Source: Macrostomum lignano
Lineage: Eukaryota
Assembly (NCBI GenBank): GCA_002269645.1
Contig: NIVC01000237.1
Location: 248,001-312,000, forward strand
Length of the DNA: 64,000 nucleotides
Direction: 5' to 3'
This document shows positions 1,694 to 42,400 of the stretch, piece after piece; position 1 is the stretch's first letter; each line of letters opens with the position of its first letter. The position numbers and the translations under genes were made by a program. Under the pieces are notes generated by a model that ran no database searches, had not been told where the DNA came from, and saw nothing but the letters and a program-made list of their open reading frames with translations.

Positions 1694-4600
1694 TCAAGCA
1701 AATTCCAATGGGTCTTGATCAGTTTTGGAGACGTGAAAAACCAGCGACGGCATGCGCTTGGCCAGGGCCGCAGCCGCTACGGGCAGGTAGGGTCGCTCGC
1801 AGTTTGAATGGCCTGTGACGATCACCGACCGGCCTTGGTCGGCGTGCCACAGCAGCTCGTGGTGCGACATCTCTCCAGTGAGCAGCAGGTCGCACTTGTC
1901 GCCGATGTCGCGTAGAAGAGAGGCGCCCGAGCCGGCGCATACGGCGACGCCTCTGGTCAGCTGGTGCTGCTGTCCGCTTGAGAGCGGCCTCACCACCTGG
2001 AAGGAAAATGAGTTACAAAAGCATTAGTCATATATACGTAATGCCTTTAGGTAGGTGGTACCGTCCTGCATATACCTAAACTGATCATCAGCACCTGACA
2101 ATGCTACAGCAGATATCATCAGCACCTGAAAATGCTACAGCAGGTATCATCAGCACCTGACAATGCTACAGCAAGGACTTCTAGACTAACAGGACGTAAA
2201 ACTCAAAGATCGTGCAATTTTTTGGAGGCCACGATTTCCTGGAAAAAATACACTGCGAAGATAGGAAAAAATCAGTTTTTCGTCACAAAATCTGTGATTG
2301 TATTTGATCTGGGGCAGTGAAGACTGCCATTCTTTTAATTTACCATGCACAATATGTTACTCTATTATATTTTCATATAGCTGTGTAGTGAAGTTTTCAT
2401 TTTCATATTGTTTTCACTTTATTTCATAAGCCCAAAGTTGCAAACTCACAAGTGGCATTAGCCGAACTTTTTGTGTTGTTCTTTTTAAAATAAAGTATAA
2501 AAACATTGCATGTAGGTACTCTTAGTCTTAAGCTATTATTGTAGGTTTAGTAACTATACTAATTCCTAGGCCTACTAGAACTAGACCTATCACTACACTA
2601 TCTAGCCTAATAAGTAATTAAATTTAGACAATGACTTAGAGATTAGTATATTTAGATTTTTTATTATATATAGATTACCAATAAATAGTTTCATATGGTT
2701 GGTTACCTAGGCTTGAGAAAGCTGTATTATCAGTTTTTAAGCCAAGCCTATATTTAGGACTAAGATTTAAGAAGAATAGACTTAATCACAAAAATAGGCC
2801 CTAACCATTTTTACTGGGTATCTATAAGAAAAAACATTGATTAGTCCTTTTATAACTTTTATTTTAAAGGCTAAAAATATTATTATATTACAAATTTGAA
2901 TAGCTTTTCTTTTCTTGAATTTGATATTTGGCTAATGCCACTTGTGAGTTTGCAACTTTGGGCTTATGAAATAAAGTGAAAACAATATGAAAATGAAAAC
3001 TTCACTACACAGCTATATGAAAATATAATAGAGTAACATATTGTGCATGGTAAATTAAAAGAATGGTAGTCTTCACTGCCCCAGATCAAATACAATCACA
3101 GATTTTGTGACGAAAAACTGATTTTTTCCTATCTTCGCAGTGTATTTTTTCCAGGAAATCGTGGCCTCCAAAAAATTGCACGATCTTTGAGTTTTACGTC
3201 CTGTTAGTCTAGAAGTCCTTGTGCTACAGCAGATATCAACAGCACCTGACAATGCTACAGCAGGCATCCTCAGCACCTGACAATGCTACAGCAGGTATCA
3301 TCAGCACCTGACAATGCTACAGCAGATATCAACAGCACCTGACAATGCTACAGCAGGCATCCTCAGCACCTGACAATGCTACAGCACAGTCTTAATTGAT
3401 ACCCACAAAGCCTACTGTCAGTAGTCAGACAAGAAACAAGCAGCAATTACGGCACTGGCCTGCAAATTCGCCAAGCCCAGGTGCTTTTTAACGGACTCGA
3501 CCGCTTCCTCGAGCGACATCGGAGTGCTAATCGGCGCCCATCGACCAGCGCCGGCGCCGGGCGTGTCTTTGCACGGCGTCACAGGCGCCGACTTGTTGAT
3601 CTCCAGCCAGCGGCCGAACGGGCCGGCCAGCAGCCAGTCGTTGAGGCCGTCCGGCCTGGCGTCCCAGGCGGTGTGCGGCGAATAGACTGCGACACCGTCG
3701 GCGAACGCGGCGGCCAGCAGGCGCTGCGGCCAGTCAGGCGAGGAGGCGAGCGCCCGCCGGAGCGGCCGGAACAGCGGCGGGTGGTAGGCGACGATGAGGT
3801 CGGCTTGGAGGCTTCGCGCCTCCTCGTAGACGCGCGACGTGAGATCGTTAGTGAGCACAACTGAGCTCACCAGCTTCTTGCCCTGTGCAATAAGGTCATT
3901 GCAAGGTCAGTTGGTTTATTTACCATGTCAAGTAATTGCAATTAGAGTTTAGCAGCTAAGGCCCACAGATATTAGAATTAGTAAATGGGCCACTCAGGCA
4001 CATATGCTTAGTAAAATAGCTTTCTACTTTCAGTTCAGTAGCAAAGAAGAATTTATAAGCTATTTTATAAGATTAAAGGCAGCTGAGATGACTTTGATAA
4101 GTTTACAAGCCCAAGCTTGCAGGCGTAAACAACTTGCTAATGCTAATTGGTTCAGGAATAATGTACATTGGCCTGTCCACTGAAATGTACATAGCAGCTT
4201 TAGGCTGGAACAACCGATGAAGGTAAAAAAATTGGGTGGTGGGGCAGGATGGTTCTGTGGGGAGTTTGAGGGTTTAAGGCAAGCTTCGGGAGGGGGGGGG
4301 GGGTTAAAAAGCCAATAACTAAGCCTTATCTTTAAAATTCCATTAAAATTCTTAGTTTAACTTAGGTCGTACTACTTGTACTTGAAACTACTGTAAGTAG
4401 TTTGCACGCAAATGTGCTGAGTGGCCCATCCAGTTATTCTAGTAGCTGTGGCTTAGACTGGATTTTGTTATAGTAGTATCCTGAATTTAGACCCTAAGAA
4501 GCCAATTCGGACCCAGGATTAGGGCTATTGTTAGGGAGGGACTGCAGTCAATTTGTGAATAAATAGCCCTAAGCCTAGCCCGATCAGGACAGCAGAGCCT

Positions 4601-8007: not shown

Positions 8008-11000
8008 TCAGGCCAGCAGATTTTCACTGGTCGGTCCAGACCGCCTTTTCGCGCCGGGCACGGCCGCTCCGCAGGGGATGCGGTCGGCCAGCAGGATCTG
8101 GACAGGGTGCGCGTAGGCGGCCAGAGCCAGGGCCAAACAGACCCAGTTGGCCGAGCTCAGCCCGCTGGCCTCGGCCAGGTCGAGCAGCGGGATCTGCACG
8201 AAGGACACCAAGCCGCAGGCCAGGCACATAACGCCGTACAGAGTGCCGAAATGGGCGGCCGGGAAGGCGGCGAACAGCAGGCAGGAGGCCAGAGAGAACA
8301 GCATGGATCTGTACAGAGCCAGCAGGGTGAACTGCAGCGGCACCAGGCCATCGTGGGCAGCGAATGACAGGCAGGAGAGCAGCAGGCCGAGACTGCACTG
8401 TAGCAGGAATGGCGCCTGCAAATTTTGTCGGGTAGACAAGCAGCATGGTTAGCTCAGAATGCGGAGCCTTGGGATACTTTCTTATCTTTGGATATTACAT
8501 GTATAGAATCTGGAATATTTCTGGTGACGAATGACTGGGATTATTCCCCTTGGGATTATGCGATTGTCGAGAAGATTGAACGGGCGGTACTGGGTGACGT
8601 TTACGCCCTGGCTCTCTTTCTTGACATTGTTGGCGCCTTCGACAACGTTATCTTTGAAGCGTTTCAGAGGGCCCTTCAAAATCGCAAAGCTCATGCTACC
8701 CTCATACGGTGGATCATGTACATGATCTCCAACCGTACGGTCACTGCTCAACTTCTTGGGCAAACTGCCTCCACCAGAGTCTGTAAGGGTGGACCCCAAG
8801 GCAGAGTCCTCACCCCGACGCTCTGGAACCTGGTCATGGACGCTCTTCTGAGTGACTCCCGACCCGACCCCGTCTTCAAAGTCGGGTATGCTGATGACGT
8901 CATGGCCATTGTGGCAGGACCGTCTCCCAGCACGCTCAGGGATCTGATGCAGAGCTTTATCCGCAAAGCAGAATCCTGGGCCAATGACAATGGTCTGGAA
9001 CTCTCTGAGCCCAAAACCGTTGCCATTATGTTTACCAGCAGACTACGCTGGAAAATACGTCCACTGCAGCTCTACGGCAGAGATATTGCCTTCGCGCACC
9101 AGACCAGATGTCTCGGGGTCACACTTGACCACCGGCTCAACTGGTCCTTCCACGTGAAAGCAAAAGCCAAGCGTGCCTCAGCCATCCTGGCCCAGCTCCG
9201 ACGAGCACTTGGCACTTCTTGGGGTCTATCCCCAAAGCGGCTTTGGTGGATCTATACTTCCGTAGTTAGACCTGCCATTACGTACGCCTCTGTTGTCTGG
9301 GTTAGCGCTACCCAGGTCAAAAGCCATGCAGACCTGCTCAACACGATCCAAGGCAGAGCGTGTAGGCTCATCTGCAAACGCCACCAGGTCCACGCCCTTT
9401 GCTGGCATGGGGGCCTTCCTTAATCTACCGCCTCTTGACCTCTTCGTCAGGGGTGAGGCGGCTAGAACGACGCGGCGTCTAATTGATGCCGGCGTCAAAT
9501 TCATTTACATGAGAGCACCTGCTAAGCGGAACCTTGTCCCGCATAGCGACCTGTGCCTCAACTTTCTCAACGAATGTCAGGCCAATCGCGTCTTCACCGA
9601 TCGCATTGCCTCAACGCTCAACCTGAGACAGCGCTACTCCGTAGCTATCGACTCGCGCGATAACATCAATGACCAATGGAACCTTGGTGAGCTTTATTGC
9701 TACACCGACGGTTCTAAGCAGTCAGCCAACACCGGCTTTGGTGTTGGAATCTTTCTGAACGGGAGGGTCATTGCTACCCACGCTCAATACACTGGGGTCA
9801 ACTCCAGTGTTTTCCAAAATGAAGTTCTGGCCATCAGCTCCTGCACTGCAGAGCTTCTCGCCACTGGCGTTACTGGTAAGAACATCATTTTCCATTCGGA
9901 CAGCCAAGCTGCCTTGCACGCCATCAGTGGCTGCAGCACCAACTCTGCTACAGTCCTCGACTGTATCAAACTCCTCAACGTGTTGGGTTCCACCAACAAA
10001 AGTACCCTTAAGTGGGTTCCGGGGCATGTGGGGATCCGAGGAAATGAGTTGGCTGACACCCTTGCAAAAGTTGGTGCCTCCGGCTCCTCTCTCGGTCCCG
10101 AACCCCTTGTCCCGATTCCTGGCTGTGTCATCGACTCGCGCATCAAAGCGTGGATCAGGACCCAACACCGCTCGACTTGGGCGAACTGCACGAACTGCAG
10201 GCAATCCAGAGGTGCTGTCCCTGAGCCCTCTCACCAGCTCCGGAAGCTCCTCTTGCGCCTCTCGCGCAGAGACATCCGGGCTGCCACCATGACCCTCTCT
10301 GGTCACGGCTGCTTCTCCAGGCACCAGTACCTGCAGGGCAACGCCACCAACGCCACCTGTAGTTTCTGCAACTCAGGTGACGAAACTGCTGAGCATTTCG
10401 TCAGCATCTGTCCCGCCTTCACGCGGGCCAGACTCACTTACCTCGGGCCACACACATCTATTACTGAAGCGTGCAAACCCGAAAACTTTAATCAGCTCAT
10501 GCGCTACCTTCGGGCCACCCGCTGGGCTAAACTCTCCTTTCCAGAGAGCACTATAGCTGCTGGCGACACTGGGGGACCTCCCTGGGCGGCGCCAACCCTC
10601 CGTCTATAGCGACGCGTCGGCCGTTCAGGGACTAGCGGAATGGGCGCCCGCGCCTTCCCGCTGTGTCCCCTCCGGGACAGCCCTGCAGCTAAGTCAAGTA
10701 AGTCAAATCCCCTTGAGATTATTCCCCTTGGGATTATTCCCCTTGGGATTATTCCCCTTGGGATTCTTTCCCTTGGGATTCTTCCCCTTGGGATTCTTCC
10801 CCTTGGGATTCTTCCCCTTGGGATTCTTCCCCTTGGGATTCTTCCCCTTGGGATTCTTCCCCTTGGGATTCTTCCCCTTGGGATTCTTCCCTTGGAATAA
10901 TTCCCCTTAGGAAATTCACCTTGGGACAATTCCGTTTAGGACAATTTCCCTTGGGATACTTCCCTTTGGGAAATTCCCCTTCAGAATATTCCCCTTAGAA

Positions 11001-13619
11001 TAATTCCCCTTACGCCTCGTACTTTTTATTGTGATATTTCCCTTGGGACAAATCAGCTCCTTGGAAATTCATTCCCCTTGGGATAATTCCCTTTGAAATA
11101 ACCCCCTTGGGATGATTCCCTTTGGGATACCCCCCTTGAGATAATTCCTCTTTCGTTATTTCACCTTGGGATAATTCCCCTTGAGATAATTCCCCTTGGG
11201 ATAATTCCCCCTAGGTTAATTCACCTTGGGATAATTCCCCTTAGGATAATTCCCCTTGGGATAATTTCCCTTGGGATAATCTTGGGATAATTTCCCTTGA
11301 GATAATTGGGACATTTCGGATCGAACTACGAGTAGGATAGAGTAATTAAAAGCATCTGCCAATGCCCAGTAAGCCGGTGCGCACCACAAGAAATCGGCAC
11401 CGCTGCCAGACGTCGGCGGCCGGTTTCGGCGGCCAGAATCGGCGAGAAAATCGAACTACGCCGACGGTGAAGAAGGCGAAGCAGAGGCCCAGCGACAAGA
11501 ACACGCCGAGCAGGCTGAGGTGCTGGACTATTGTCGGCGCGCGAAGCGACACGTCCGACACGCTGCCATCGACGGCGAAACGAACGTAGAGAGCCACCTG
11601 GTTGAGGAATACGAAGAAGCGCAGGATGGAGCAGACTGCCCAGATCACGTGACAGCCGAACATCCGGGTCAGCAGGACGGACTGCACCGGCGGCAGCTCG
11701 GCTGCCGGAGTCGCGGCGGCCGCGGCCTCGGCGGCTGCAGAGACTGAAAAAGGAGGCGTATCGATGCTGCAACCGGGGATCTCTTCTGGGTTGCAGGCCT
11801 GAACAGGAGATAGGAAACTCTCGGGAGGTATATGGGAAACTCTCACAGATTCGGTATGGGAAACTCTTACAGATTCGGTATGGGAAACTCTTACAGATTC
11901 GGTATGGGAAATCTCACAGATTCGGTATGGGAAAATCTCACAGATTCGGTATGGGAAAATCTCACAGATTCGGTATGGGAAAATCTCACAGATTCGGTAT
12001 GGGAAACTCTCACAGATTCGGTATGGGAAAATCTCTCAGATTCGGTATGGGAAAATCTCTCAGATTCGGTATGGGAAATTCTCACTGATACAGCTAATGT
12101 AACTAAATGATTTGAAGCTTTCAAACTCGAACTCACCATTCGCAGTAGTCTTAATCTCGATCTCCTTAGCAACAGGCTCCACCGCAGCGTCTAACGGTGT
12201 GACTTCGGAGTCGGCAGCGGCAGCCGCAGCGGCATCAGTGGTGGCAGCGTCGGCTGCTTCAGCGGGGTCGACAGGCGCCGCATCGGCGGCTACGGCCTGC
12301 CTCGGATCGTGCTCGAGCGGCTCCTTCAGTTCGAAGATCGCCTGTTTCGGACGCCGACGCTTGCGTGAGCAGGCGCTGAATGGATTGCACTCGCCGGCGA
12401 ACTGGTCGCCATGACGGATGTGATTGGGCGGCAGCAGCACCAGCCCGTTGACTAGGCAGACGGTGGCTGCCAGGCAGCCGAGGAACAGGAAGCAGGCCAG
12501 CCGACGGCGGTACATCGCCGAAGCGTCGTCCAGTCCGGTGCCATAGGCCACCGTCTGGATCAGAGTGAACACTACGGCGCTGCTGTCGAAGGTGCCGGAC
12601 ACCAAACAGATGAGGACCTGGCAGTGTAACTGAGCTCAATTAATTTGTTTGTCTACAAAGGTAAGCGGCTGGAGTAACTGTTTATTTAAATGCCTCGTCA
12701 GCTACTTAGTATTGGATTTTTTTTACACTTTTATACTTTTTTTACAATTAAAGACAGCTCTATGTCTGACTTTTTATTGCCTGCGAATCTCTAGGGGCCG
12801 TAAAGTCGTATTTGAGGCGTGTTTAGAGTTGCTGTAGAGTCACGGAGTAGCCTTTGAAGCGCATTTGCGTCGCATGATGAATTTGAGTCACATCTCTAGC
12901 GAAAGATAAGCGCCAACACAGCGACTCTTGAACGACTCTTTTGCGACTCTTTTACGATTCTGTAACTCACGTGACGCGCTTGAGACGCAACAGTCGCCTC
13001 TCCATCGCATTAGACGAGTTTGAGTCGTTAAAAAAAGTCAAAAGAGCTGCACAAGAGTCGCTCGACTCACAAGAGAGTTGTTTACAACGACTCTAGCTAT
13101 TCTTGTCATTTTCAACGGGTACAGAATCGAACCAGCACCCACCTCTCTCCAGGCCGGGAACAGTTCCGACACGCACAGGCTGCTGACAATTGAAACTGCG
13201 CTGGCCACAGCCCAGGAGGCGGCGCCAATGTAGAGCAGCCAGGCTGAGGCCGGGGTGGCAACGGCGAAGCACAGGCAGGTGAGAAAGCCGGCAGCAGCGC
13301 AGGCACACTTGCAGGCCCGCATGCCGGCCCTATCCAGCAGCAGGCCCATCGGCAGGGCGCACAGCAGCTGCATCCCGGTGCCCACAGCGTTCACCTGGGA
13401 GAAGCCCTCATTCTGACTGCGGCAGGTCTCGTTGCCGGAGGCAAGAACAGCCACCGAGACGTTGCAGCCGTCGGCGAAGAAGCCTTCGGCCAGCAGCAGC
13501 AGCCGCAGTGAGGAGGAAAACCCGTAGAACACGCCGCCTATGCAGAAGACCTCGCAGATGGCCAGGACCACCGCCAGGCCCGGCGTCCAGCGGCCAAGAA
13601 GGCGCTTTGGCTCCCAGCA
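8008..13619 (-). CDS. SLC43 (LAT3/LAT4)-like MFS transporter, 4 exons, ~574 codons, no ATG in the first exon
   Basis: Exons 13619-13143, 12617-12137, 11743-11385, 8415-8008 with consistent phases 0/1/0. TM1 CEVFCIGGVFYGFSS..LLAEGFFADGC, MGLLLDRAGMR, SGTFDSSAVVF and FPAAHFGTLYG match the SLC43 pattern. The 3' end may splice to a further exon at 6956-6873. Confidence 0.8.
8560..10706 (+). mobile_element. 5'-truncated non-LTR retrotransposon (RT + RNase H + CCHC knuckle; I group, LOA/Lian-like), frameshifted, antisense in a transporter intron
   Basis: RT motifs FLDIVGAFD, GGPQGRVLTP and YADD; RNase H YTDGSK, HSDSQAAL and WVPGH.GIRGNELAD; CSFC...ETAEHFVSICP. One extra A at 9376-9378 shifts the frame; stop at 10607-10609; 3' tail TAAGTCAAGTAAGTCAA; flanked by minisatellite units. 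Confidence 0.9.
10707..11310. repeat. 13-15 bp minisatellite (TTCCCCTTGGGATT[A/C])
   Basis: Tandem array; about 1.5 units also lie left of the LINE at 8537-8559. Confidence 0.9.
11831..12085. repeat. 23-24 bp minisatellite (ATGGGAAAATCTCACAGATTCGGT)
   Basis: About 10 copies filling most of the transporter intron 11744-12136. Confidence 0.9.
12770..13119. repeat. Dispersed intronic repeat, copy 1 (CGACTC/GAGTCG-rich)
   Basis: Three collinear blocks align with 41085-41327: GGGGCCGTAAA.TCGTAT.TGAGGCGTG; AAGCGC.AACACAGCGACTCT; GAGTTGTTTACA...ACGACTCT..AGCTATTCTT.TCA. Confidence 0.75.
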
Positions 13620-13644
13620 CTGCAATGGGAGTAGAGCGATGGTT

Positions 13645-15952
13645 AATTGTAGATTCAACTGCAGAGAGCTGTAGATTCTACTGCCGGGATCTGTAGATTC
13701 TACTGCAGGGAGTTGCAGATTCTACTGCCGGGATCTGTAGATTCTACTGCCGAGATCTGCAGATTCTACTGCCGGGATCTGCAGATTTTACTGCCGGGAT
13801 ATGCAGATTCTACTGCCGGGATCTGTAGATCCTACTGCCGAGATCTGCAGATTCTACTGCCGGGATCTGTAGATTCTACTGCAGAGAGTTGCAGATTCTA
13901 CTGCCGGGATCTGCAGATTCTACTGCCGGGATCTGCAGATTCTACTGCCGGGATCTGCAGATTCTACTGCCGGGATCTGTAGATTCTACTGTCGGGATCT
14001 GTAGATTCTACTGCCGGGATCTGTAGATTCTACTGTCGGGATCTGTAGATTCTACTGCAGAGATCTGTAGATTCTACTGCCGGGATATGTAGATTCTACT
14101 GCAGGGATCTGTAGATTCTACTGTCGGGATCTGTAGATTCTTCTGCAGAGATCTGTAGATTCTACTGCCGGGATATGTAGATTCTACTGCAGAGATCTGT
14201 AGATTCTACTGTCGGGATCTGTAGATTCTACTGTCGGGATCTGTAGATTCTACTGTCGGGATCTGTAGATTCTACTGCCGGGATCTGTAGATTCTACTGT
14301 AGGGATCTGTAGATTTTACTGTCGGGATCTGTAGATTCTACTGCAGAGATCTGTAGATTCTACTGTCGGGATCTGTAGATTCTACTGCAGGGATATGTAG
14401 ATTCTACTGCCGGGATCTGTAGATTCTACTGTCGGGATCTGTAGATTCTACTGCAGGGATATGTAGATTCTACTGCCAGGATCTGTAGATTCTACTGTCG
14501 GGATCTGTAGATTCTACTGCAGGGATCTGTAGATTCTACTGCCAGGATCTGTAGATTCTACTGTCGGGATCTGTAGATTCTACTGCCGGGATCTGTAGAT
14601 TCTACCGTCGGGATCTGTAGATTCTACTGCAGAGATCTGTTGATTCAACTGTCGGGATCTGTAGATTCTACTGCCGGGATCTGTAGATTCTACTGTCGGG
14701 ATCTGTAAATTCTACTGCCAGGATCTGTAGATTCTACGGTCGGGATCTGTAGATTCTACTGCCGGGATCTGTAGATTCTACTGTCGGGATCTGTAGATTC
14801 TACTGCCGGGATCTGTAGATTCTACTGCCGGGATCTGTAGATTCTACTGTCGGGATCTGCAGATTCTACTGCAGAGATCTGTAGATTCTACTGCCGGGAT
14901 CTGTAGATTCTACTGCAGAGATCTGTAGATTCTACTGCCGGGATCTGTAGATTCTACTGCCGGGATCTGCAGATTCTACTGCCGGGATCTGTAGATCCTA
15001 CTGCAGAGAGTTGCAGATTCTACTGCCAGGATCTGTAGATTCTACTGCAGAGAGTTGCAGATTCTACTGCCGGGATCTGCAGATTCTACTGCCGGGATCT
15101 GCAGATTCTACTGCCGGGATCTGTAGATTCTACCGCAGAGATCTGTAGATTCTACTGCCGGGATCTGTAGATTCTACTGCCGGGATCTGTAGATTCTACT
15201 GCAGAGATCTGTAGATTCTACTGCCGGGATCTGTAGATTCTACTGCCGGGATCTGTAGATTCTACTGTCGGGATCTGTAGATTCTACTGTCGGGATCTGT
15301 AGATTCTACTGCCGGGATCTGTAGATTCTACTGTCGGGATCTGTAGATTCTACTGCAGGGATCTGTAGATTCTACTGCAGAGATCTGTAGATTCTACTGT
15401 CGGGATCTGTAGATTCTAATTCTACTGCAGGGATCTGTAGATTCTACTGTCGGGATCTGTAGATTCTACTGTCGGGATCTGTAGATTCTACTGTCGGGAT
15501 CTGTAGATTCTACTGTCGGGATCTGTAGATTCTACTGTCCGGATCTGTAGATTCTACTGTCGGGATCTGTAGATTCTACTGCAGAGATCTGTAGATTCTA
15601 CTGTCGGGATCTGTAGATTCTACTGCCGGGATCTGTAGATTCTACTGCCGGGATCTGTAGATTCTACTGCAGATATCTGTAGATTCTACTGTCGGGATCT
15701 GTAGATTCTACTGCAGGGATCTGTAGATTCTACTGCCGGGATCTGTAGATTCTACTGCAGGGATCTGTAGATTCTACTGTCGGGATCTGTAGATTCTACT
15801 GTCGGGATCTGTAGATTCTACTGCAGGGATCTGTAGATTCTACTGCCAGGATCTGTAGATTCTACTGTCGGGATCTGTAGATTCTACTGCAGGGATCTGT
15901 AGATTCTACTGCCAGGATCTGTAGATTCTACTGTCGGGATCTGTAGATTCTA
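13645..15952. repeat. 22-bp minisatellite (GGGATCTGTAGATTCTACTG[C/T]C), roughly 100 copies
   Basis: Occupies almost the whole gap between the EIF2B1 3' end and the first acceptor of the transporter gene. Confidence 0.95.
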
Positions 15953-16135
15953 TTCAGCTGCATATGTAAATATTAGATACATAATAATACAGCACTAAAA
16001 AAGTACAAAAAATCAAATCCTCGGAGCACTGAAAAGATCTATCGCATTTAGATACGCTAAATCCCGCGTCTATCAGCTATATTTAAACGAGTCTAACACA
16101 CGATTACACAATCCAAAGGTCAAAGGTCACACAGG

Positions 16136-17854
16136 TCACAGATACAGCTTAGTCAGCTCGTCGCTAACAGCCGACGGCGGCACAATGCCAATATCGGTGA
16201 ACAGCAGTTTGAGATACTGTGGCGGAGTGTAATCGGTGATTGGAGAGCGGCATTGGCCGCCAGACTTCGTCCGGGTCCGCTCGGCCGAGGCCGGGTAGCG
16301 CAGCTCCAAGTCCAGATCGGCCTGGTTTAGCGGATAGGCTCGCAAGAATTTGCAGCTCTCGGCCAGCACGTAGACTGGCACGTTGAGAGCGTGGGCGCAC
16401 AGGCACACGGTGTAGGTGCCAATCTTGTTAACAATGCCGCCGCTCTGTGTGACAGCCTCTGCCCCTAGTAGAACCATATCCACCCGCTCAAGCGCTACCC
16501 CAACCTCGGCGTCCAGCACTAGCGAGGCGTTGATGCCGGCTTGTTGAAGGTCGGCCAGCATTCGCTCCCCGGATTTGTCTGGCAGAGACTGCGTCACCGT
16601 GCACTGGAAGTCTAGCTGCGCTTTGGCCGCTCGCTTTAGCAGGGCCAGAACCACCTTGGAGCTGCGCGGGAGGTGGGGCGAATGTGGGTTATAAGTACAC
16701 TGCGTCTGCGATCCGCTTGGAGACGCTTAGACAGGAGGTTAGACTGGGAATAGACACAGGTTTGATTGGGGTTAGATAGAGGGTAGATTGGGGTTAGACA
16801 GGGGTTAGATTGGGGTTAGACAGAGGGTAGATTGGGGTTAGACAGGGATTAGATTGGGGTTAGACAAGGGGTAGATTAGGGTTAGACAGGGGTTAGATTG
16901 GGGTTAGACAAGGGGTAGATTAGGGTTAGACAGGGGTTAGATTGGGGTTAGACAAGGGGTAGATTAGGGTTAGACAGGGGGGTAGATTAGGGTTTGACAG
17001 GGGATTAGATTGGGGTTAGGCGGGGTGGATTGGGGTTAGACAGAGGGGGCGGGTAGATTAGGGTTAGACAGAGGGTGTTGGTAGATTAGGGTTAGACAGG
17101 GGATTAGATTGGGGTTAGATAGGGGGTAGATTGGGGTTAGATAGGGGGTAGTTTGGGGTTAGATAGGGGGTAGATTGGGGTTAGAAAGAGGGGGCGGGTA
17201 GATTAGGGTTAGACAGGGGATTAGATTGGGGTTAAATTGGGGTTAGACTGGGTTAGGCAGGCAGGGGGTAGATTGGTGTTAGACAGAGGGGGCTAGGATA
17301 TGAATAGACATCTAGAGTAGTCTAATTATCTAGACTATTGTGAGTAGACAAGTAGTCTCCTGATCAACTCTGAGTAGACAAGTGTTACACAGTGGTTCGA
17401 CATGGAAGGAAAGCAGACTCATAGAAGGGGGCTAAACGCAGTCAGCTGGAACTCACCGCGAATGCAGCAGCACCCTAGTGCCATGATTAATAAACGGCAA
17501 GGCCATACTCATAATCCTATCCAGACTCTGTCTAATTCTGCTCAAAAAATTCTCGCCCCGACTAATGAGCACCCGGCGGGTGTCATCAAAGCGAGGCTGG
17601 TCCAGCTCAGTCATGGTGATGTAGCGGAGGAACAGCTCGCCGCCAGACCGCACAGACGCATTGGCTAGGTGTGATCGCATCAGCTCATTATTTGTCTCCA
17701 CTATTTTCTCGCGCACCTCAGTCACGGTCTGAGCCTCTTCAGACTGTTGGATGACTGCAATTAGAGTTTGAATTTGGGCCTCAACGGCCGATTTGTCTTC
17801 CTCTGCGCCCATCAACCGATTGAACATTTCTAGCGGGCTCTCTGCACTGCCCAT
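16136..17854 (-). CDS. EIF2B1: Translation initiation factor eIF2B subunit alpha, 2 exons, 307 aa
   Basis: Exons 17854-17457 and 16661-16136 (phase 2). Motifs SVRSGGELFLRYIT, VLLHSRSKVV, VLLGAEAVTQSGGIVNKIGT, YVLAESCKF, DYTPPQYL.LLFTDIG and PSAVSDELTKLYL. Confidence 0.95.
16740..17300. repeat. G-rich degenerate minisatellite (GATTGGGGTTAGACAGGGGGTA) in the EIF2B1 intron
   Basis: Tandem G-rich units, some containing TTAGGG. Confidence 0.85.
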
Positions 17855-26900: not shown

Positions 26901-29900
26901 AATCCCGCAGATAAAGGCCATTCGAGGGAATCGGCTCGATTATCACTATCTCATCATGGGATCCGTGAGTGTCGCTCTCGTTAATTGGGGGGGGGGGAAT
27001 TAATCACGTCACCCAGTTCTGGTATCACCCCTGAAATCCTTCATGGTATCACCCCTGACATCCTTCATGGTATCACCCCTGACATCCTTTATGGTATCAC
27101 CCCTGACATCCTTTATGGTATCGCCCCTGACATCCTTTATGGTATCACCCCTGACATCCTTTATGGTATCACCCCTGACATCCTTTATGGTATCACCCCT
27201 GACATCCTTTATGGTATCACCCCTGACATCCTTTATGGTATCGCCCCTGACATCCAATTTAATGCTTTTGACATCCATGTTGGCGCTCTTTTATGAGGCC
27301 CTATCGTTATTGCTATCAATAAATAACAATTCAATTCAATAACTGTCAAGCTTCCACCCGCAAACAAATCACATTTGAAGGACATCAACGAGGTGAACCA
27401 GACGATGTTCCTTCACGGCGGCGTGAACATCACGGGCTTCACCGTGTTGAACTTCTCCGATCCAACATTCGCCAGCTTCAGAGATGAATTCTGGTTCTCG
27501 GACGCCAGGCTAAGGGCCTACCCGACGGCCCTGGACAAGCTCGACCCCAGCAGCCGCATTGTGCCGGTGAGCACAGAATATTCTTTGCTAGATAAATGTA
27601 GATGATTCTGTGGGGGTGCTTTGGGCAAATCAAGGCAAGCAGACATGTCCATTCTGCTGAGATCTTCGAAATTTGACTGCCAGTGACATTTGACTGTCAG
27701 AGACATTTGACTGTCAGTGACATTTGACTGCCAGTGACATTTGACTGTCAGAGACATTTGACTGTCAGTGACATTTGACTGCCAGTGACATTTGACTGCC
27801 AGTGACATTTGACTGCCAGTGACATTTGACTGCCAGTGACATTTGACTGCCAGTGACATTTGACTGCCAGTGACATTTGACTGCCAGTGACATTTGACTG
27901 CCAGTGACATTTGACTGCCAGTGACATTTGACTGCCAGTGACATTTGACTGCCAGTGACATTTGACTGCCAGTGACATTTGACTGTCAGAGACATTTGAC
28001 TGTCAGTGACATTTGACTGCCAGTGACATTTGACTGTCAGAGACATTTGACTGTCAGTGACATTTGACTGCCAGTGACATTTGACTGCCAGTGACATTTG
28101 ACTGCCAGTGACATTTGACTGCCAGTGACATTTGACTGCCAGTGACATTTGACTGCCAGTGACATTTGACTGCCAGTGACATTTGACTGCCAGTGACATT
28201 TGACTGCCAGTGACATTTGACTGTCAGTGAAATTTGACTGCCAGTGACATTTGACTGTCAGTGACATTTGACTGCCAGTGACATTTGACTGCCAGTGACA
28301 TTTGACTGCCAGTGACATTTGACTGCCAGTGACATTTGACTGCCAGTGACATTTGACTGCCAGTGACATTTGACTGTCAGTGACATTTGACTGCCAGTGA
28401 CATTTGACTGCCAGTGACATTTGACTGTCAGTGAAATTTGACTGCCAGTGACATTTGACTGTCAGTGACATTTGACTGCCAGTGACATTTGACTGCCAGT
28501 GACATTTGACTGCCAGTGACATTTGACTGCCAGTGACATTTGACTGCCAGTGACATTTGACTTCCAATATTTGACCGCCAATATAGCCCTACCCTATAGG
28601 TTTAATGTAAAAAACTTTAACATTAAACCTAAGGGGGCCGTAGCTTAGCGGTCTGGCGCAGCGCTCTGATGTACCAGCAGCCCAGGCTCGATTCCAAGTG
28701 CTGTCACACTAATTTGTGACTTTTGAATCTCGGCTTGGCTCTGCTCGTGCAGTTAAACGCCCTTTGATGACCAACCACCAAGGCACAGTGAAGTGTACAT
28801 GCCTAACGATAAATAAAGTTAGGGCTGCTGTACACTCCTGTGTGAGAGTGTGCCTCTGCGTATGACTGCGTACGTATCCGCGCGCTTGTGTGCCTGCTCA
28901 GGGGAGTCGGCGGAATGGGCAGTAATGCCTCTCGCCGGTTGTGTAACAATGTCACTTAAATAGGAAGCAAAGCAATAAAAGAAGATTAAACCTAACCTAA
29001 TTTCAATCCTTTACCCAAATCATTGGCAGTCACCCCTGAGCACGCAGACCCTTACACTTTCTCATCCTCAGACATACCGCTAAGCTCGTACTCTGACCCC
29101 ATCCCAGTATAGAAAGCACACAATGTACTTTAGCTTGGCTCCGCTCTCCGATTTATCAGCCTGTCTGCTTGCCAGCTTTTCAATTGTCAAATTAATAAAA
29201 ATGCTACGGAAAGTACTTCTATCGCTATTTTTTGTTCTTTGAAACGATTTTTTGGCCTCCTAATACTGGCGTAAATTCATTCCGACTTCGCGTCGCCACC
29301 TCCCAACGAGTAAATGATTTGAAGGCCGCCTTCACGAGCCGACGTTCGTCCCTCCCCCGCAGCTCTCCGTCGCCCTGATGATCGACGGGTTCTCGGCCTT
29401 CTTCAGGGCCCACCAGAAGCTGACGCCTCAAAGACGGAACTCTCGCGACCACAAGGAGGCCTGCATGCCGCCGGAAACCCCGGCCTTCCCGGCCGAGAAT
29501 ATCACCGCCGTGTTTAAGGGCCGCGTTTCCGGATTCCCCGGCGTGACGGGCTGGGTGCAGTTTGACCAGGCCGGCTACAGAGAGAACTACCGCGTCCAGG
29601 GCATTGAGGCCGGCGTGCGTAGCGAACTGCAGCCGGTGAGTTCCCGGTGTCCGGTTCCCGGTGTGTCCAGTTCCCGGTGTGTCCAGTTCCCGGTGTGTCC
29701 AGTTCCCGGTGTGTCCAGTTCCCGGTGTGTCCAGTTCCCGGTGTGTCCAGTTCCCGGTGTGTCCAGTTCCCGGTGTGTCCAGTTCCCGGTGTGTCCGGTT
29801 CCCAGTGTGTCCGGTTCCCGGTGTGTCCGGTTCCTGGTGTGTCCGGTTCCCGGTGTGTCCAGTTCCCGGTGGGTCCGGTTCCCGGTGTGTCCGGCTCCCC

Positions 29901-32900
29901 GTGTGTCCGGTTCCCGGTGTGTCCGGTTCCCGGTGTGTCCGGTTCCAGGTGTGTCCGGTTCCCAGTGTGTCCGGTTCCCGGTGTGTCCAGTTCCCGGTGT
30001 GTCCGGTTCCCGGTGTGTCCGGTTCCCAATGTGTCCGGTTCCTGGTGTGTCCGGTTCCCGGTGTGTCCAGTTCCCGGTGGGTCCGGTTCCCGGTGTGTCC
30101 GGTTCCTGGTGTGTCCGGTTCCCAGTGTGTCCGGTTCCCGGTGTGTCCGGTTCCCGGTGTGTCCGGTTCCTGGTGTGTCCGGTTCCCAGTGTGTCCGGTT
30201 CCCGGTGTGTCCGGTTCCCGGTGTGTCCGGTTCCTGGTGTGTCCGGTTCCCAGTGTGTCCAGTTTCCGGTGTGTCCAGTTCCCGGTGTGTCCGGTTTCCG
30301 GTGTGTCCAGTTCCCGGTGTGTCCAGTTCCCGGTGTGTCCAGTTCCCGGTGTGTCCAGTTCCCAATGTGTCCGGTTCCCGGTGTGTCCGGTTCCCGGTGT
30401 GTCCGGTTCCCGGTGTGTCCGGTTCCCGGTGTGTCCGGTTCCTGGTGTGTCCGGTTCCCAGTGTGTCCAGTTTCCGGTGTGTCCAGTTCCCGGTGTGTCC
30501 GGTTTCCGGTGTGTCCAGTTCCCGGTGTGTCCAGTTCCCGGTGTGTCCAGTTCCCGGTGTGTCCAGTTCCCAATGTGTCCGGTTCCCGGTGTGTCCGGTT
30601 CCCGGTGTGTCCGGTTCCCGGTGTGTCCGGTTCCCGGTGTGTCCGGTTCCTGGTGTGTCCGGTTCCCGGTGTGTCCATTTCCCGGTGTGTCCAGTTCCCG
30701 GTGTGTCCAGTTCCCGGTGTGTCCGGTTCCCAATGTGTCCGGTTCCTGGTGTGTCCGGTTCCCGGTGTGTCCGGTTCCCGGTGTGTCCGGTTCCCGGTGT
30801 GTCCGGTTCCCGGTGTGTCCAGTTCCCGGTGTGTCCGGTTCCCGGTGTGTCCGGTTTCCGGTGTGGATTCGCAAAATCCTCTTTCCCTTGCAGATCAGCA
30901 TCTGGTCGAACGGCCAGTTCCTTCTCACCCGAAACTACTCTAAATCGCGCAAGGGATTTCACCTGCCGTTCAGCAACCGGACCCGCATAGTAACCAGCAT
31001 CCTTGGCGAGCCGTTCCTCATGGTTCGTCAGAACAGTTCTCTGGACGGCACCCCGCTCGTTGGAAACGACAGATTTGTCGGCTTTTGCGCTGATCTCATC
31101 AAGCTGCTGGCCAAGGACATTGGGTTTGATTATGTCATCAAGCCGGTGGCCGACGGCAAATACGGAGACGACAGCGTCAACGACACCTGGAATGGCATGA
31201 TTGGAGAGCTGTACCGATTGGTGAGTCAGAGTGGAGAGGATTGTGGAAGCTTTTTCGGCGAAATACGAGCGGTAGACGTACCCCAACTGGTGTCTCACCC
31301 AGAGCCACGCAACCCCAACTGGTGTCTCACCCAGAGCCACGCAACCCCAACTGGTGTCTCACCCAGAGCCACGCAACCCCAACTGGTGTCTCACCCAGAG
31401 CCACGCAACCCCAACTGGTGTCTCACCCAGAGCCACGCAACCCCAACTGGTGTCTCACCCAGAGCCACGCAACCCCAACTGGTGTCTCACCCAGAGCCAC
31501 GCAACCCCAACTGGTGTCTCACCCAGAGCCACGCAACCCCAACTGGTGTCTCACCCAGAGCCACGCAACCCCAACTGGTGTCTCACCCAGAGCCACGCAA
31601 CCTCAACTGGTGTCTCACCCACAGCCACGCAACCCCAACTGGTGTCTCACCCAGAGCCACGCAATCCCAACTGGTGTCTTACCCAGAGCCATGCAACCCC
31701 AACTGGTGTCTCACCCACAGCCACGCAACCTCAACTGGTGTCTCACCCACAGCTACGCAACCCTAACTGGTGTTCTCACCCACAGCTACGCAACCCCAAC
31801 TGGTGTCTCACAAAAAGCCATGCAACCCCAACTGGTGTCTCACCCAGAGCCACGCAACCCCAACTGGTGTCTCACCCAGAGCCACGCAACCGCAACTGGT
31901 GTCTCACAAAAAGCCACGCAACCCCAACTGGTGTCTCACAAAAAGCCATGCAACCCCAACTGGTGTTCTCACCCACAGCTACGCAACCCTAACTGGTGTT
32001 CTCACCCACAGCTACGCAACCCCAACTGGTGTCTCACAAAAAGCCACGCAACCCCAACCAGTATCTCCATGCACCTGTCAACAGGAGGCCGACATCGCCG
32101 TAGCGCCGCTGACCATCACGTCCAAACGCGAGAAAGTCGTGGACTTCTCCACGCCCTACATGGAGGTGGGGTTGAGCATCATGTTCCTGAAGCCCACCAA
32201 CCCGGAGTCTGACCAGTTCGGCTTCATGAAGCCGCTGTCCAAGGAGATCTGGATGTGCATCGCGTTCGCCTATCTGGGCGTCAGCGTGGTGCTGTTCGTA
32301 GTCAGCCGCTTCAGCCCGTACGAGTGGCACCTCAACCAGGAGTCAGACAAGGCCGACAAGGTCACCAACGATTTCAGCATCTTCAACTCGCTCTGGTTCA
32401 CGCTGAGCGCCTTCATGCAACAGGGCGGCGACATCTCGCCCAGGTGAAACAAATGGTGCTGTGGATGCTGTGGGTGCTGTGGTGAGGCTGTGAGGAGATG
32501 AAGATAATGAGTATGTGAGGAGATGAAGATAATGAGTATGTAAGCAGATGAAGATAGTGAGTCTGTGAGGAGATGAAGATAATGGATCTGTGAGGAGATG
32601 AAGATAATGAGCCTTTGAGAAGATGAAAATAATGAGTCTGTGAGGAGATTAAGATAGTGAGTCTGTGAGGAGATGAAGATAATGGATCTGTGAGGAGATG
32701 AAGATAATGAGTATGTGAGGAGATGAAGATAATGAGTATGTGAGGAGATGAAGATAGTGGGTCTGTGAGGAGATGAAGATAATGAGTCTGTGAGGAGATG
32801 AAGATAATGAGCCTTTGAGAAGATGAAAATAATGAGTCTGTGAGGAGATTAAGATAGTGAGTCTGTGAGGAGATGAAGATAATGAGTCTGTGAGGAGATA

Positions 32901-39423: not shown

Positions 39424-42400
39424 TCAACACTTAGATGAGCCCCGCGCAGGCTTGCCAATATCCCGACACTGCACATGCAGAAAAAGCCCCCTGCACGCCA
39501 TCTTGTAGTAGGCGACAGAGTGCGACTCAACCAGGCTCTGGTAGAGCTGGTCGGCGTCCTCCGGCAGGCTGGGGAACGGGTTCACTCCGCACTCGCCAAT
39601 CCAGGGTATGTCGGTCAGCAGGTCCCAGGGATGGCCGTCGCTCGAATGGCCGGACTCGAACCGCAGCATCTGGCCGCGGCCGAACCGGTTGGCCCGGGTG
39701 GCCGGGTCGCCCGGACGCGACTCTTTGACATAATCACGTCTGATCAGATTTTCGGAGAAGTGCATGATGTCGCGAAAGATCTGATGGAAATGCGACTGCA
39801 ATCGGTCCAAGTTGCTGTCGCGCGCCTCGGGGCCCTGGAAGGGGGGAGGGGGCGGTGGATTATGCGTGATTTGAATCTATAGCGATCATTTCAGAATCTG
39901 AAGACTGAGAATTTGAGTGACAGCCTAGCAACTAAAGATCTGGGAGCGTTGTCGATGAAGCCTGAGGATCTGGGAGGCTTGGAACCCAGCCTGAGAATCT
40001 GGGAGGCTTGGCAACCCAGCCTGAGAATCTGGGAGGCTTGGCAACCCAGCCTGAGAATCTGGGAGGCTTGGCAACCCAGCCTGAGAATCTGGGAGGCTTG
40101 GCAACCCAGCCTGAGAATCTGGGAGGCTTGGCAACCCAGCCTGAGAATCTGGGAGGCTTGGCAACCCAGCCTGAGAATCTGGGAGGCTTGGCAACCCAGC
40201 CTGAGAATCTGGGAGGCTTGGCAACCCAGCCTGAGAATCTGGGAGGCTTGGCAACCCAGCCTGAGAATCTGGGAGGCTTGGCAACCCAGCCTGAGAATCT
40301 GGGAGGCTTGGCAACCCAGCCTGAGAATCTGGGAGGCTTGGCAACCCAGCCTGAGAATCTGGGAATTGTATGGGAATACAGCATTAGGATCTGGGAATAC
40401 AGCATGAGGATCTGGGAATACAGCATGAGGATCTGGGAATACAGCATTAGGATCTGGGAATACAGCATGAGGATCTGGGAATACAGCATGAGGATCTGGG
40501 AATTACAGCATTAGGATCTGGGAATACAGCATTAGGATCTGGGAATACAGCATGAGGATCTGGGAATACAGCATGAGGATATGGGAATACAACATGAGGA
40601 TATGGGAATACAGCATGAGGATATGGGAATACAGCATGAGGATATGGGAATACAACATGAGGATATGGGAATACAGCATGAGGATATGGGAATACAGCAT
40701 GAGGATATGGGAATACAGCATGAGAATCTGGGAATACAGCATGAGGATCTGGGAGGCTTGGCAATCCAGCCCGAGTATCTAAAATCAGAGATCTAATGGC
40801 TCAATGAGCAGCCACAACTCACCATGTAGTCGTGCGTGAGCAGCAGATGAGATCCGGGCAGACGCAGCAGAGCCCGCTCCGCCAACGGTTCGTAGCGGCC
40901 CATTGGTCGGTAGCAAACAGCCAGACTGTCGTCACCAGAGCCTTTAAAAAAAGCAATGTTAAAGTGCTTTAGTACATTTAAACTATTATAAGAGGTTTCT
41001 AAATTATAAAGAAGCAACCTCTAGACGACTCTAAAACAACCAGATGACGCTAAAGAGTCGCCCAAGAGTCAATTTGAGGCGTTTTGATTGTCTGCAACTC
41101 TGAAACGACTCTGGGGCCGTAAATTCGTATCTGAGGCGTGCTGGAATCGCTGAAAATCACTGATTATAACAACTTTAACAACTATATTTAGTCAACCTTA
41201 GTTTGTAGAGAGTTAAGCGCTAACACAGCGACTCTGACGACTTTTTCAGGACTTTTACGATCCAGAGTTCTTAGTGAGTTGTTTACATTGGCAACGACTC
41301 TGTAGCTATTCTTATCACGTTAACGTGTTTTCTTAACGCGCTCGGATTACCTTCCCGCGGTTCAATGCACCGGGTGGTCATCAGGTCTACTAGGTCCTGA
41401 TAGAACTGGGCATAGTCGAAGCTCGGACAGCCGACAATCCGGAGCCGGCGCAGGCCGCGGGCGGAACCGGCCGGCAGGCGGATCTCGGCCAGCCGCGGAC
41501 AGGACTCCAGCGTCAGGGTGCGCAGACGCGGAGACTCGGTGCAATCAATCAAGGTCAGGCCGCAGCGCTCAAGGTGAACCGCATGCAGCATGGCGGAGCG
41601 CAGAGCGAACGGCGACTGCGGAACCGGCTGGTACAGCCGCAGGTCGTGCGTGTCCAGACAGACGTCCCTGACGAACCAGCAGTCCCGCTGCGGCTCCGAG
41701 GGCAGCTCAAACTCCGGCTGGTCGTCGCTGATGTTGCCGCGGGAGCGCAGCCGGTAGTGAGAGCTGAATGAGGAGAAGTCGGACCAGACGGCATCGCCGC
41801 GACGCTGGTGCGCGGCGGCGTCGTGATGACTGGAGGCCGGCGAGTTGGGCGAATTGACCTGCAACGATGGGGAAGGCTGGCAGTCACGCTGTGGATTCAA
41901 CTGGCTGCTTGGCTGATAATCTCCAACTGCCTACCCAGGTAGCTACCGATTGCAGGTTGAGCACACAGGGGTGTCAATAAAAAGTAAATAATTAACTCCG
42001 AAACCGGTCCTCGGATATCGCAACTTTGAATCTTACTTTTTTAAACACGTATAAAAGCTGATATCGCGAAACCCACCGGACTAGCGGTCATCTCTATTTA
42101 TCTACTTATCTTCCGTAAAAGGTGCCCTATGCTTACCTACCTACAGAACTGTATATATTTGTATTATCCACTCTATCTTGCTACATATACATACCTACAT
42201 AAATATCCACGATCTTATCTAACTTGCTTACCTGGGCATCTATGATCTACCCCAGCACTTAAATACCCTATACCCTACCTGCCTTCTATCCCCTACCTAA
42301 CTACCTTCTATCCTCCTACCTACCTACCTTCTATCTCCCTACCAACCTACCTTCTATCCCCCTACCTAGCTACCTTCTATCTCCCTACCAACCTACCTTC

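Follow-up and report, generated by a model that had tools for sequence, protein, structure and literature searches.

How can a gene without its own start codon be translated? An SLC43-like transporter gene of Macrostomum lignano raises this question, and our analysis of a 64,000-nt stretch of DNA around it (the window) indicates that the gene most likely borrows its AUG from the end of the spliced leader. We consider it highly probable that the full account holds, in which the leader is trans-spliced at position 13619 and its AUG initiates translation, with both the junction and the initiation deduced from the genomic sequence. Donation of a leader AUG has been known in flatworms since 2006, and the SLC43-like gene is a new example, not a new phenomenon.

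Source and identity of the gene

The preliminary description had assumed a flatworm. The window is from M. lignano contig NIVC01000237.1, with the locus sequence (L001) from that contig identical base for base, and the neighbouring EIF2B1 gene, as it had been named earlier, matches Pfam IF-2B at 1e-43 and yields a spliced 307-aa product with 100% identity to BOX15_Mlig004119g1, an annotated M. lignano protein; this bears out both the assumption and the gene name. A non-flatworm organism, prompted by the 50–55% GC of many 2-kb bins of the window, was ruled out by the 100% M. lignano match.

The SLC43-like gene is GenBank BOX15_Mlig002832g1 (protein PAA87309.1, minus strand), and an exon model started at 13616 matches PAA87309.1 exactly. 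Its frame is open throughout 574 codons in four exons (Table 1), the first encoding the N-terminal tail, TM1, a loop of the glycosylated type and TM2–TM4, and the whole protein has about 10–12 hydrophobic segments. Intron 3 holds a retrotransposon fragment. Among solved structures, human SLC43A3/ENBT1 (9l38; E=1.3e-19, query residues 21–226 and 355–573) matches best, followed by LAT4/SLC43A2 (9jbs; E=2.4e-5), in line with the SLC43-like identity first proposed. A library of 1.84 billion proteins contained 112 relatives at E≤1e-10, and Pfam MFS_1 matched residues 28–511 at E=3.2e-5 and 23.5 bits, below the gathering cut-off of 33.4. Judged by its sequence, the protein is a divergent MFS/SLC43 member. 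It resembles ENBT1 and LAT4 in both MFS halves, a short cytoplasmic N-tail of like length, a long post-TM1 loop with N-x-S/T sites, GxLLDRxGxR after TM2 and the GxFDSSAVVF segment, but is very divergent from them and has a long, Ala-rich central loop. Single-exon fragments had no match in Pfam scans, and exon 1 had none in a protein search of a 5.8-billion-protein index; an exact look-up and a full-length query later retrieved PAA87309.1, so the null search reflects a limit of the word index and not an absent protein.

Table 1 Features between and within EIF2B1 and the SLC43-like gene (window coordinates).
Feature	Positions	Strand	Description
EIF2B1 (eIF2B alpha)	16136..17854	-	2 exons (17854-17457, 16661-16136); own ATG at 17854
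Unique sequence past EIF2B1 stop (3'UTR/start of intergenic)	15953..16135	-	94% identical to paralog
Hypothetical cis 5' exon	15963..15932	-	ATG to weak donor CA GTAGAA at 15931; in no annotated model
22-bp tandem repeat	13648..15952	-	104.5 copies, 2,305 nt; coding-strand unit CAGTAGAATCTACAGATCCCGG
Alternative in-frame acceptor CTGCAG	13664..13659	-	Leader ATG at 13658 would yield MLNLQLTIALLPLQCWEPK...
Unique stretch	13626..13647	-	Branch-like TTAAC (13646-13642) and pyrimidine-rich tract, read from sequence
Proposed trans-splice acceptor TTGCAG	13625..13620	-	Fits published [T/C]TNCAG motif
Coding exon 1	13143..13619	-	159 codons, starting and ending in phase 0; donor GTGGGT at 13142
Alternative downstream in-frame AG (GGGAG CCA)	13612..13611	-	Leader ATG at 13610 would give MPKRLLGRW...
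First in-frame ATG, codon 83	13373..13371	-	Within TM2
Coding exon 2	12137..12617	-	Holds SLC43-typical GxFDSSAVVF segment
Coding exon 3	11385..11743	-	Exon model
Coding exon 4 and stop codon	8008..8415	-	Exon model

The proposed acceptor and the missing start codon

Exon 1 begins at 13619, in phase 0 and with CWEPKRLLGRW, directly after TTGCAG. The pyrimidine-rich sequence that follows TTAAC is CTCTACTCCCATTGCAG, with CAG at 13622–13620, and every element of the acceptor that the preliminary description had read here, from TTAAC to the phase-0 frame, was found again on the minus strand. Upstream, an in-frame TAG lies at 13724–13722, with zero ATG between it and the exon. The first in-frame ATG lies in the second hydrophobic segment, just ahead of the MFS motif GLLLDRAGMR, so a start there would leave out TM1 and half of TM2; the earlier statement that this ATG is far downstream and would cost TM1 is therefore correct.

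From the EIF2B1 stop (16138–16136) to the acceptor is 2,516 nt, with three same-strand ATGs (16047, 15982 and 15963), all in the unique stretch next to EIF2B1. The tandem repeat that fills most of this interval has a unit with no ATG, one TAG and 1–2 acceptor-like YTNCAG motifs, and probably represents outron or intercistronic RNA. Because the repeat unit is ATG-less, the scarcity of ATGs is a by-product of the array and not itself a signal. Counted on the coding strand, the intergenic region has 123 YTNCAG motifs, nearly all in the repeat, and the leader joined at most of them would open dead-end ORFs of 1–22 aa. As the repeat is full of such copies, a motif match is weak evidence, and we dropped the match at the acceptor as a strong argument. 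Of the two alternative in-frame sites in Table 1, the upstream CTGCAG would give an extension that the paralog does not share, owing to a 1-nt indel; the paralog site equivalent to the downstream AG was also tested.

The spliced leader as the probable source of the AUG

The sole spliced leader known in M. lignano, CGGTCTCTTACTGCGAAGACTCAATTTATTGCATG (in short CGG...TTATTGCATG), ends in ATG (PMC8629364), so the AUG-ended leader that the preliminary description had claimed for flatworms is true of this species. Between 30 and 39% of M. lignano genes are trans-spliced (PMC8629364, PMC5730564), with a trans-acceptor motif of [T/C]TNCAG (PMC8629364). The window itself contained no leader RNA gene, as Rfam and tRNA scans were null and the 3' half of the leader had no match.

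We propose that the transcript of the SLC43-like gene probably carries a long outron and that the 35-nt leader would be trans-spliced onto TTGCAG at 13625–13620, giving the predicted mRNA junction ...TTATTGCATG/TGCTGGGAGCC. The 3'-terminal AUG of the leader would then stand in phase 0 directly ahead of TGC TGG GAG and, since the leader holds no other AUG, would become the first AUG of the mature mRNA. Joined at 13619, the leader reads ATG TGC TGG GAG (MCWEPK...), and scanning ribosomes starting there would make a 575-aa protein, MCWEPKRLLGRW... If not trans-spliced, the transcript would offer no AUG ahead of TM1 and no functional 12-TM transporter would be expected. An exact MCWEPK... protein was absent from the protein collection searched.

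The predicted N-tail is 5 residues longer than that of human ENBT1, query residue 21 aligning to ENBT1 residue 16. For the majority of the 150 top matches listed, query residues 14–16 align to residues 7–12 of the match, and seven N-termini were read directly. The preliminary description had expected an N-terminus of normal SLC43 length, and the predicted one falls in the range of these roughly 150 homologs.

That the Macrostomum leader ends in ATG, and that this is likely used as an initiator, has been remarked on (PMC10468722). According to Cheng, Cohen, Ndegwa & Davis (2006, J Biol Chem 281:733), as cited in PMC9851317 and PMC12582326, leader-AUG initiation occurs in S. mansoni, and ORFs that depend on it are termed slORFs in PMC9851317. 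The literature searched contained no demonstration of leader-AUG initiation in M. lignano and no per-gene analysis of leader-AUG use in free-living macrostomorphs. The gene resembles the class described by Cheng et al. 2006 in S. mansoni and other flatworms in its AUG-ended leader, its phase-0 acceptor at the first coding exon and the lack of another in-frame AUG ahead of essential parts of the protein. It differs in belonging to a free-living macrostomorph, in having an acceptor-rich 2.3-kb repeat directly upstream, and in that its junction and translation are predicted.

Annotated models and paralogs

PAA87309.1 is flagged ‘partial’, and its CDS starts 3 nt past the acceptor (W, not C), so its 5' end is not base-exact. 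A paralog, PAA91337.1, is also ‘partial’, with its first residue, C, at the position that corresponds exactly to 13619. In UniRef, two M. lignano models (A0A1I8HXJ5, A0A1I8HJE3) begin with LQCWEPK and no Met, where LQ is genomic read-through of TTG CAG. In all, four independent Met-less models of the gene and its paralog start between 6 nt upstream and 3 nt downstream of the acceptor. The GenBank models come from an RNA-seq-based pipeline in which leader-trimmed transcripts and peaks of leader reads set the 5' ends (PMC5730564). The repeat boundary lies 29 nt upstream, yet the annotated 5' ends fall at the acceptor, which argues against simple truncation of the assembly. Full-text search for Mlig002832 returned nothing, nor did the supplements searched for Mlig002832, Mlig015998 and Mlig004119.

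Divergence between the paralogs steps up exactly at the acceptor, from 2% in the exon to about 17% upstream. Exon 1 has 10 differences in 477 nt, of which three fall in the 246 nt of the first 82 codons (one synonymous, two V-to-I), a conservation equal to that of the rest of the exon, and the 29 nt upstream (13620–13648) have 5 substitutions and 1 indel (Fisher p=9e-4 against exon 1, p=4e-4 against the first 82 codons). A paralog dN/dS over these codons was dropped, as it would have rested on just 3 differences. The paralog carries the same repeat in the same place, in 42.5 copies, and its Mlig_3_7 copy (L002) reads TTGCTG, not TTGCAG, at the acceptor position.

M. lignano has a second SLC43-like gene, distantly related (36–38% identical), that is likewise Met-less and ‘partial’ in three of three copies. 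An in-frame CAG run precedes its start, which is about 10 residues ahead of TM1, and its first Met is in TM2. In the alignment, no more than about 5 codons separate the proposed acceptors of the two lineages.

Alternative explanations

One alternative is that the annotations missed a 5' exon, cis-spliced and bearing an ATG of its own; the sole candidate between the two genes is the ATG at 15963 (MQLNRIYRSR..). The preliminary description reported no ATG-plus-donor exon up to the EIF2B1 stop; this stands for the annotated models, none of which has one, but not on paper, where a route 15963/15931/13680 exists. The donor would be CA GTAGAA in the first repeat unit and the acceptor an AG of the last unit, before 13680, making the array an intron and adding about 30 residues. 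The route keeps frame, as does 9016/9048/9961 in the paralog, but with any GT/AG this is easily achieved by chance, and the paralog offers 11 such combinations. ATG 15963 is conserved in both copies, and repeats hamper transcript assembly in this species (PMC8629364). However, GTAGAA is a poor fit to the M. lignano donor consensus GT[G/A]AG (PMC8629364) and is present in many of the repeat units, and the extension carries an indel and several substitutions between paralogs, suggesting no coding constraint. CDSs that were 5'-partial for this reason would begin upstream of the acceptor, whereas the two GenBank models begin at it or 3 nt after. We regard the cis exon as quite improbable.

We rate as very improbable that the leader AUG is not translated, and that the gene instead uses the internal AUG at codon 83 or a non-AUG codon, or is an untranslated, decaying duplicate. 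Translation of the mRNA from the leader AUG is predicted, one paralog has lost the AG, intron 3 has its retrotransposon fragment, and redundant copies are many in M. lignano (BUSCO duplication 79%; PMC10468722). Against this, the frame is intact over its four exons, a start at codon 83 would cost the MFS fold its first one and a half helices, and codons 1–82 are as conserved between paralogs as the remainder of exon 1. The leader AUG, moreover, would be the first AUG and in frame. Hardly credible is an assembly artefact, in which the true upstream sequence reads ...ATTGCATG TGC..., one base has been lost and the gene has its own ATG. The genome assembly was built on long reads, and removal of one base from ATTGCATG, the final 8 nt of the leader, would yield either ATTGCAG, the window sequence, or ATTGCTG, that of the paralog (L002). 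Yet the same base would have to be gone in both Mlig_3_7 copies and at both UniRef starts, the site is not a homopolymer, the likeness to the leader ends after 6–7 nt, and an ATG is likewise absent from the second SLC43-like gene, whose junction sequence differs.

Implications for annotation and experiment

With leader-AUG donation as the preferred reading, little is at stake for general biology, as such donation in flatworms is long described. For annotation, PAA87309.1, PAA91337.1 and three copies of the related gene are called ‘partial’ but are probably complete once the leader AUG is added, and pipelines that trim the whole leader would systematically truncate or mislabel such genes. M. 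lignano is a transgenesis model, and the gene would provide a clean endogenous test in which protein output should depend strictly on trans-splicing, of use for reporter designs and for tests of acceptor choice beside a repeat rich in competing acceptor motifs. A broader reading, in which leader-AUG dependence is an old, conserved trait of the whole Macrostomum SLC43-like family and the ATG-free, TAG-bearing repeat is a decoy or regulatory outron that controls the supply of translatable mRNA, seems to us unlikely.

Possible operon context

EIF2B1 and the SLC43-like gene lie on the same strand, and subtracting the repeat reduces their spacing to 211 nt. Synteny of the pair is kept in the paralog, where 1,157 nt reduce to 212 nt. 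Operons in M. lignano have been defined by a repeat-adjusted intergenic distance of <1 kb, permitting a first gene that is not trans-spliced (PMC8629364), with the main mode of distances at about 100 nt (Ustyantsev & Berezikov 2021, PMC8629364). Both adjusted distances are within 1 kb, with trans-splicing of the downstream gene itself predicted, and the SLC43-like gene may be the downstream cistron of a transcript starting at EIF2B1, in a putative operon. The pair resembles known M. lignano operons (PMC8629364; Wudarski et al. 2017, PMC5730564) in its shared strand, short adjusted distance, repeat-inflated spacer and YTNCAG at the downstream gene, but the annotation names differing transcriptional units for the two genes, and the pair is known here from sequence and annotation. 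One copy of the second SLC43-like gene is the fourth gene of its transcriptional unit.

Locus architecture and gene model

The transporter (SLC43-like) gene had been described as opening directly behind a splice acceptor without an ATG of its own, and exon, acceptor and missing ATG all read out as described on the minus strand (table below). Upstream in this frame, the first stop is TAG 13724 with no ATG before it, and the first downstream in-frame ATG is at 13373, codon 83. The 2,516-nt stretch separating the gene from EIF2B1, the upstream same-strand gene, holds just three minus-strand ATGs; because the repeat unit lacks ATG, this scarcity is no independent signal. The acceptor TTGCAG conforms to [T/C]TNCAG, the trans-acceptor motif enriched in M. 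lignano (PMC8629364), but the coding strand between the two genes has 123 copies of [T/C]TNCAG, nearly all within the repeat, so the match alone carries little weight. Each 22-bp unit carries one TAG, no ATG and one or two acceptor-like YTNCAG motifs.

Positions of the features discussed (window coordinates, or the locus's own coordinates where L002 to L005 is named)
Feature	Contig	Position	Strand	Detail
EIF2B1, two exons		17854-17457, 16661-16136	minus	ATG 17854, stop TGA 16138-16136
Unique sequence after EIF2B1 stop			minus	183 nt
22-bp tandem repeat, 104.5 copies		15952-13648	minus	unit CAGTAGAATCTACAGATCCCGG
Unique 22 nt		between repeat and TTGCAG	minus	TTAAC and pyrimidine-rich tract
Acceptor TTGCAG		13625-13620	minus	
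SLC43-like open frame		from 13619	minus	TGC TGG GAG CCA AAG = CWEPKRLLGRW
SLC43-like gene, four exons		13619-13143, 12617-12137, 11743-11385, 8415-8008		
Same 22-bp repeat, paralogous locus L002, 42.5 copies	NIVC01000089.1	9027-9971		
PAA87309.1	window locus			"partial", starts WEPK, 3 nt after AG
PAA91337.1 (paralog)	NIVC01000089.1			"partial", starts CWEPK, exact equivalent of 13619
UniRef A0A1I8HXJ5 and A0A1I8HJE3 (M. lignano)				both start LQCWEPK
Second SLC43-like gene, L003	NIVC01002382.1	6001-8521		
Second SLC43-like gene, L004	NIVC01002599.1	8001-10422		
Second SLC43-like gene, L005	NIVC01001103.1	3001-8184		

Begun at 13616, the four-exon model equals GenBank PAA87309.1 at every residue (573 aa). 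The closest solved structures are of human SLC43A3/ENBT1 (9l38, E=1.3e-19, both MFS halves), followed by SLC43A2/LAT4 (9jbs, 2.4e-5), and Pfam MFS_1 scores 23.5 bits, under its 33.4 cut-off. In the protein formed by the leader's AUG plus the exon from 13619, hydropathy analysis puts TM1 at roughly residues 12-35; the loop behind it carries NVS and NET sites, and TM2 includes Met-83 and leads into the MFS motif GLLLDRAGMR. Initiation at codon 83 would therefore remove TM1 and half of TM2, bearing out the earlier claim that the first in-frame ATG would delete TM1. The normal-length SLC43 N-terminus expected with the leader's AUG was also recovered: with Met before Cys-1 the tail exceeds that of ENBT1 by 5 residues (query residue 21 pairs with ENBT1 chain residue 16) and falls inside the range of ~150 family members.

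Species and spliced leader

The assumption that the organism is a flatworm proved correct. Spliced EIF2B1 is 100% identical to M. lignano BOX15_Mlig004119g1 (307 aa), whose locus, NIVC01000237.1:254136-275854, equals window 6136-27854 base for base. The published leader of this species, CGGTCTCTTACTGCGAAGACTCAATTTATTGCATG (PMC8629364), is 35 nt long and its sole ATG forms the final three bases, as the preliminary description supposed. An estimated 30% of M. lignano genes are trans-spliced (PMC8629364), and the 2023 Macrostomum genome paper regards the leader's final ATG as a likely translation start codon (PMC10468722). Initiation at a flatworm leader AUG was established in Schistosoma mansoni by 2006 work cited in PMC9851317; further sources on such initiation in flatworms are PMC12582326 and PMC5832876.

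Annotated 5' ends

None of the four annotated proteins covering the gene and its paralog has a Met, and the LQ of the two UniRef models is genomic read-through of TTG CAG. The annotated 5' ends coincide with the acceptor, not with the repeat boundary 29 nt upstream, and thus fit a splice-defined end, unlike plain assembly truncation at the repeat. The GenBank models go back to a genome-guided transcriptome of leader-trimmed transcripts, and in the same pipeline peaks of leader-trimmed reads split transcripts into genes (PMC5730564). The annotation drew on the public RNA-seq runs SRP082513 and SRR2682326. The GenBank partial coding sequences start at TGG 13616 in the window and at the TGC equivalent of 13619 in the paralog, a 3-nt mismatch that probably stems from the trimming of the leader or from the mapping of reads to multiple copies.

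Comparison with the paralogous locus

The paralogous locus L002, on contig NIVC01000089.1, carries EIF2B1, the SLC43-like gene and NIF3 in this order on a single strand. The same repeat lies between the first two genes in both contigs, at different copy numbers, and is therefore older than the contig divergence. The loci differ at 12/189 positions of the unique region after the EIF2B1 stop and by 5 substitutions plus 1 indel in the 29 nt ahead of the acceptor, compared with 10/477 positions in exon 1 and 3/246 in the first 82 codons (one synonymous, two V-to-I). Fisher tests show this sharp change at the acceptor to be significant (p = 9e-4 and 4e-4), so constraint starts at the exon's first base, and the 1-nt indel argues that the open frame upstream of the acceptor is non-coding. 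In Mlig_3_7 the L002 acceptor reads TTGCTG; TTGCAG is what follows from the UniRef model carrying the residues that distinguish the paralog.

Proposed trans-splicing and alternative origins of the start codon

We propose that a primary transcript with a repeat-rich outron, perhaps a polycistron begun at EIF2B1, would be trans-spliced at 13620/13619, giving an mRNA headed by the 35-nt leader. The predicted junction of leader and 13619 (NIVC01000237.1:261,619) reads GACTCAATTTATTGCATGTGCTGGGAGCCAAAGCGCC (paralog, ...GGGAGCCGAAGCGCC), and the unspliced string is CTCCCATTGCAGTGCTGGGAG. The leader's terminal AUG would be the first AUG of this mRNA, in phase with 574 codons, and initiation there would yield MCWEPKRLLGRW... 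Two nearby AGs would also keep the frame, with exon starts at 13658 (a 13-residue extension) and 13610 (MPKRLL), so slight acceptor heterogeneity would stay productive. Joining the leader at the tested repeat motifs gives ORFs of just 1-22 aa, except at 13668, which opens 87 aa out of frame.

The claim that no ATG-plus-donor exon lies upstream held for the annotated models, none of which contains one, but not entirely for the genomic sequence: on paper, a 5' exon with ATG 15963 could be cis-spliced from the donor CA/GTAGAA to the AG before 13680, preserving the frame in both paralogs. That donor is poor, however, recurring in many array units, and the route would append a non-conserved extension. 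Alternatively, a genomic ATG upstream of the exon could be hidden by a shared assembly deletion, an idea suggested by genomic ATTGCAG and ATTGCTG, each of which is the leader's 3' end ATTGCATG minus one base; this is very unlikely, as it needs identical loss in the two UniRef models as well as in the two Mlig_3_7 copies. We consider it highly probable that the gene takes its start codon from the leader. It would be a further example of a known flatworm mechanism, previously noted in M. lignano in general terms only, and its main value would lie in fixing "partial" annotations and in offering a clean test case for leader-AUG use.

A second SLC43-like gene

In a full-library search, the best non-self relative was a further SLC43-like protein of M. 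lignano, with 36-38% identity and encoded by three genomic copies (PAA58371.1, PAA72218.1 and PAA56626.1), all "partial", one of them named g4, the fourth gene in a transcriptional unit. These proteins begin QQ(Q)YQLKPG right after or inside an in-frame CAG run, with TM1 about 10 residues on and the first Met within TM2 in 3/3 copies; in L003, the copy read in frame, an in-frame stop precedes the start by 13 codons, and no ATG intervenes. The second gene probably depends likewise on the leader's AUG. A Met-less arrangement in two distant paralogs is unlikely to be an annotation accident, and suggests that leader-AUG use may be a family trait of M. lignano SLC43-like genes. The second gene has FERM and EF-hand genes as same-strand neighbours.

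One genomic copy of each SLC43-like gene has ATTGCTG for ATTGCAG, an A-to-T change in the AG (L002 9994-10000, against window 13626-13620; L003 5964-5970, against L004 7973-7979 and L005 2963-2969). The pattern could reflect chance, a shared ancestral acceptor, an assembly artefact or, in copies that are redundant, loss of the acceptor.

Operon context and neighbouring genes

Operons in M. lignano are defined by distances <1 kb; repeats inflate intercistronic distance and a non-trans-spliced first gene is permitted (PMC8629364). With the repeat discounted, EIF2B1 and the SLC43-like gene lie 211 nt apart in the window and 212 nt in L002, both within that limit. Although annotated under different unit names, the two may be co-transcribed as a polycistron. 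Co-oriented with the transporter gene and 3' of it lies a NIF3/DUF34-family gene (window ~1694-3870, minus; L002 16222-18657). It has its own ATG in L002 (MNLADAVAQLEEF...) and might be the third gene of a cluster sharing one orientation.

Both paralogs have, within the sole EIF2B1 intron, a tandem array of the 11/22-bp CCCCAATCTAA type (window 16727-17286, L002 7715-8179). Intron 3 of the SLC43-like gene contains an antisense non-LTR retrotransposon fragment (8425-10609, plus strand; Pfam RVT_1 and RNase_H ORFs), an insertion that may be copy-specific, given a gene span of 3.3 kb in the paralog versus 5.6 kb here. By-eye inspection of ORF translations placed a putative ionotropic glutamate-receptor-like gene, its introns full of long minisatellites, at ~29,000-34,000 (plus). 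Also by eye, the candidates seen were an F-box/LRR-like gene (41,000-48,300, minus), a gypsy-type reverse-transcriptase fragment (49,225-51,800, plus) and a 473-aa transposase-like ORF (53,325-54,746, plus).
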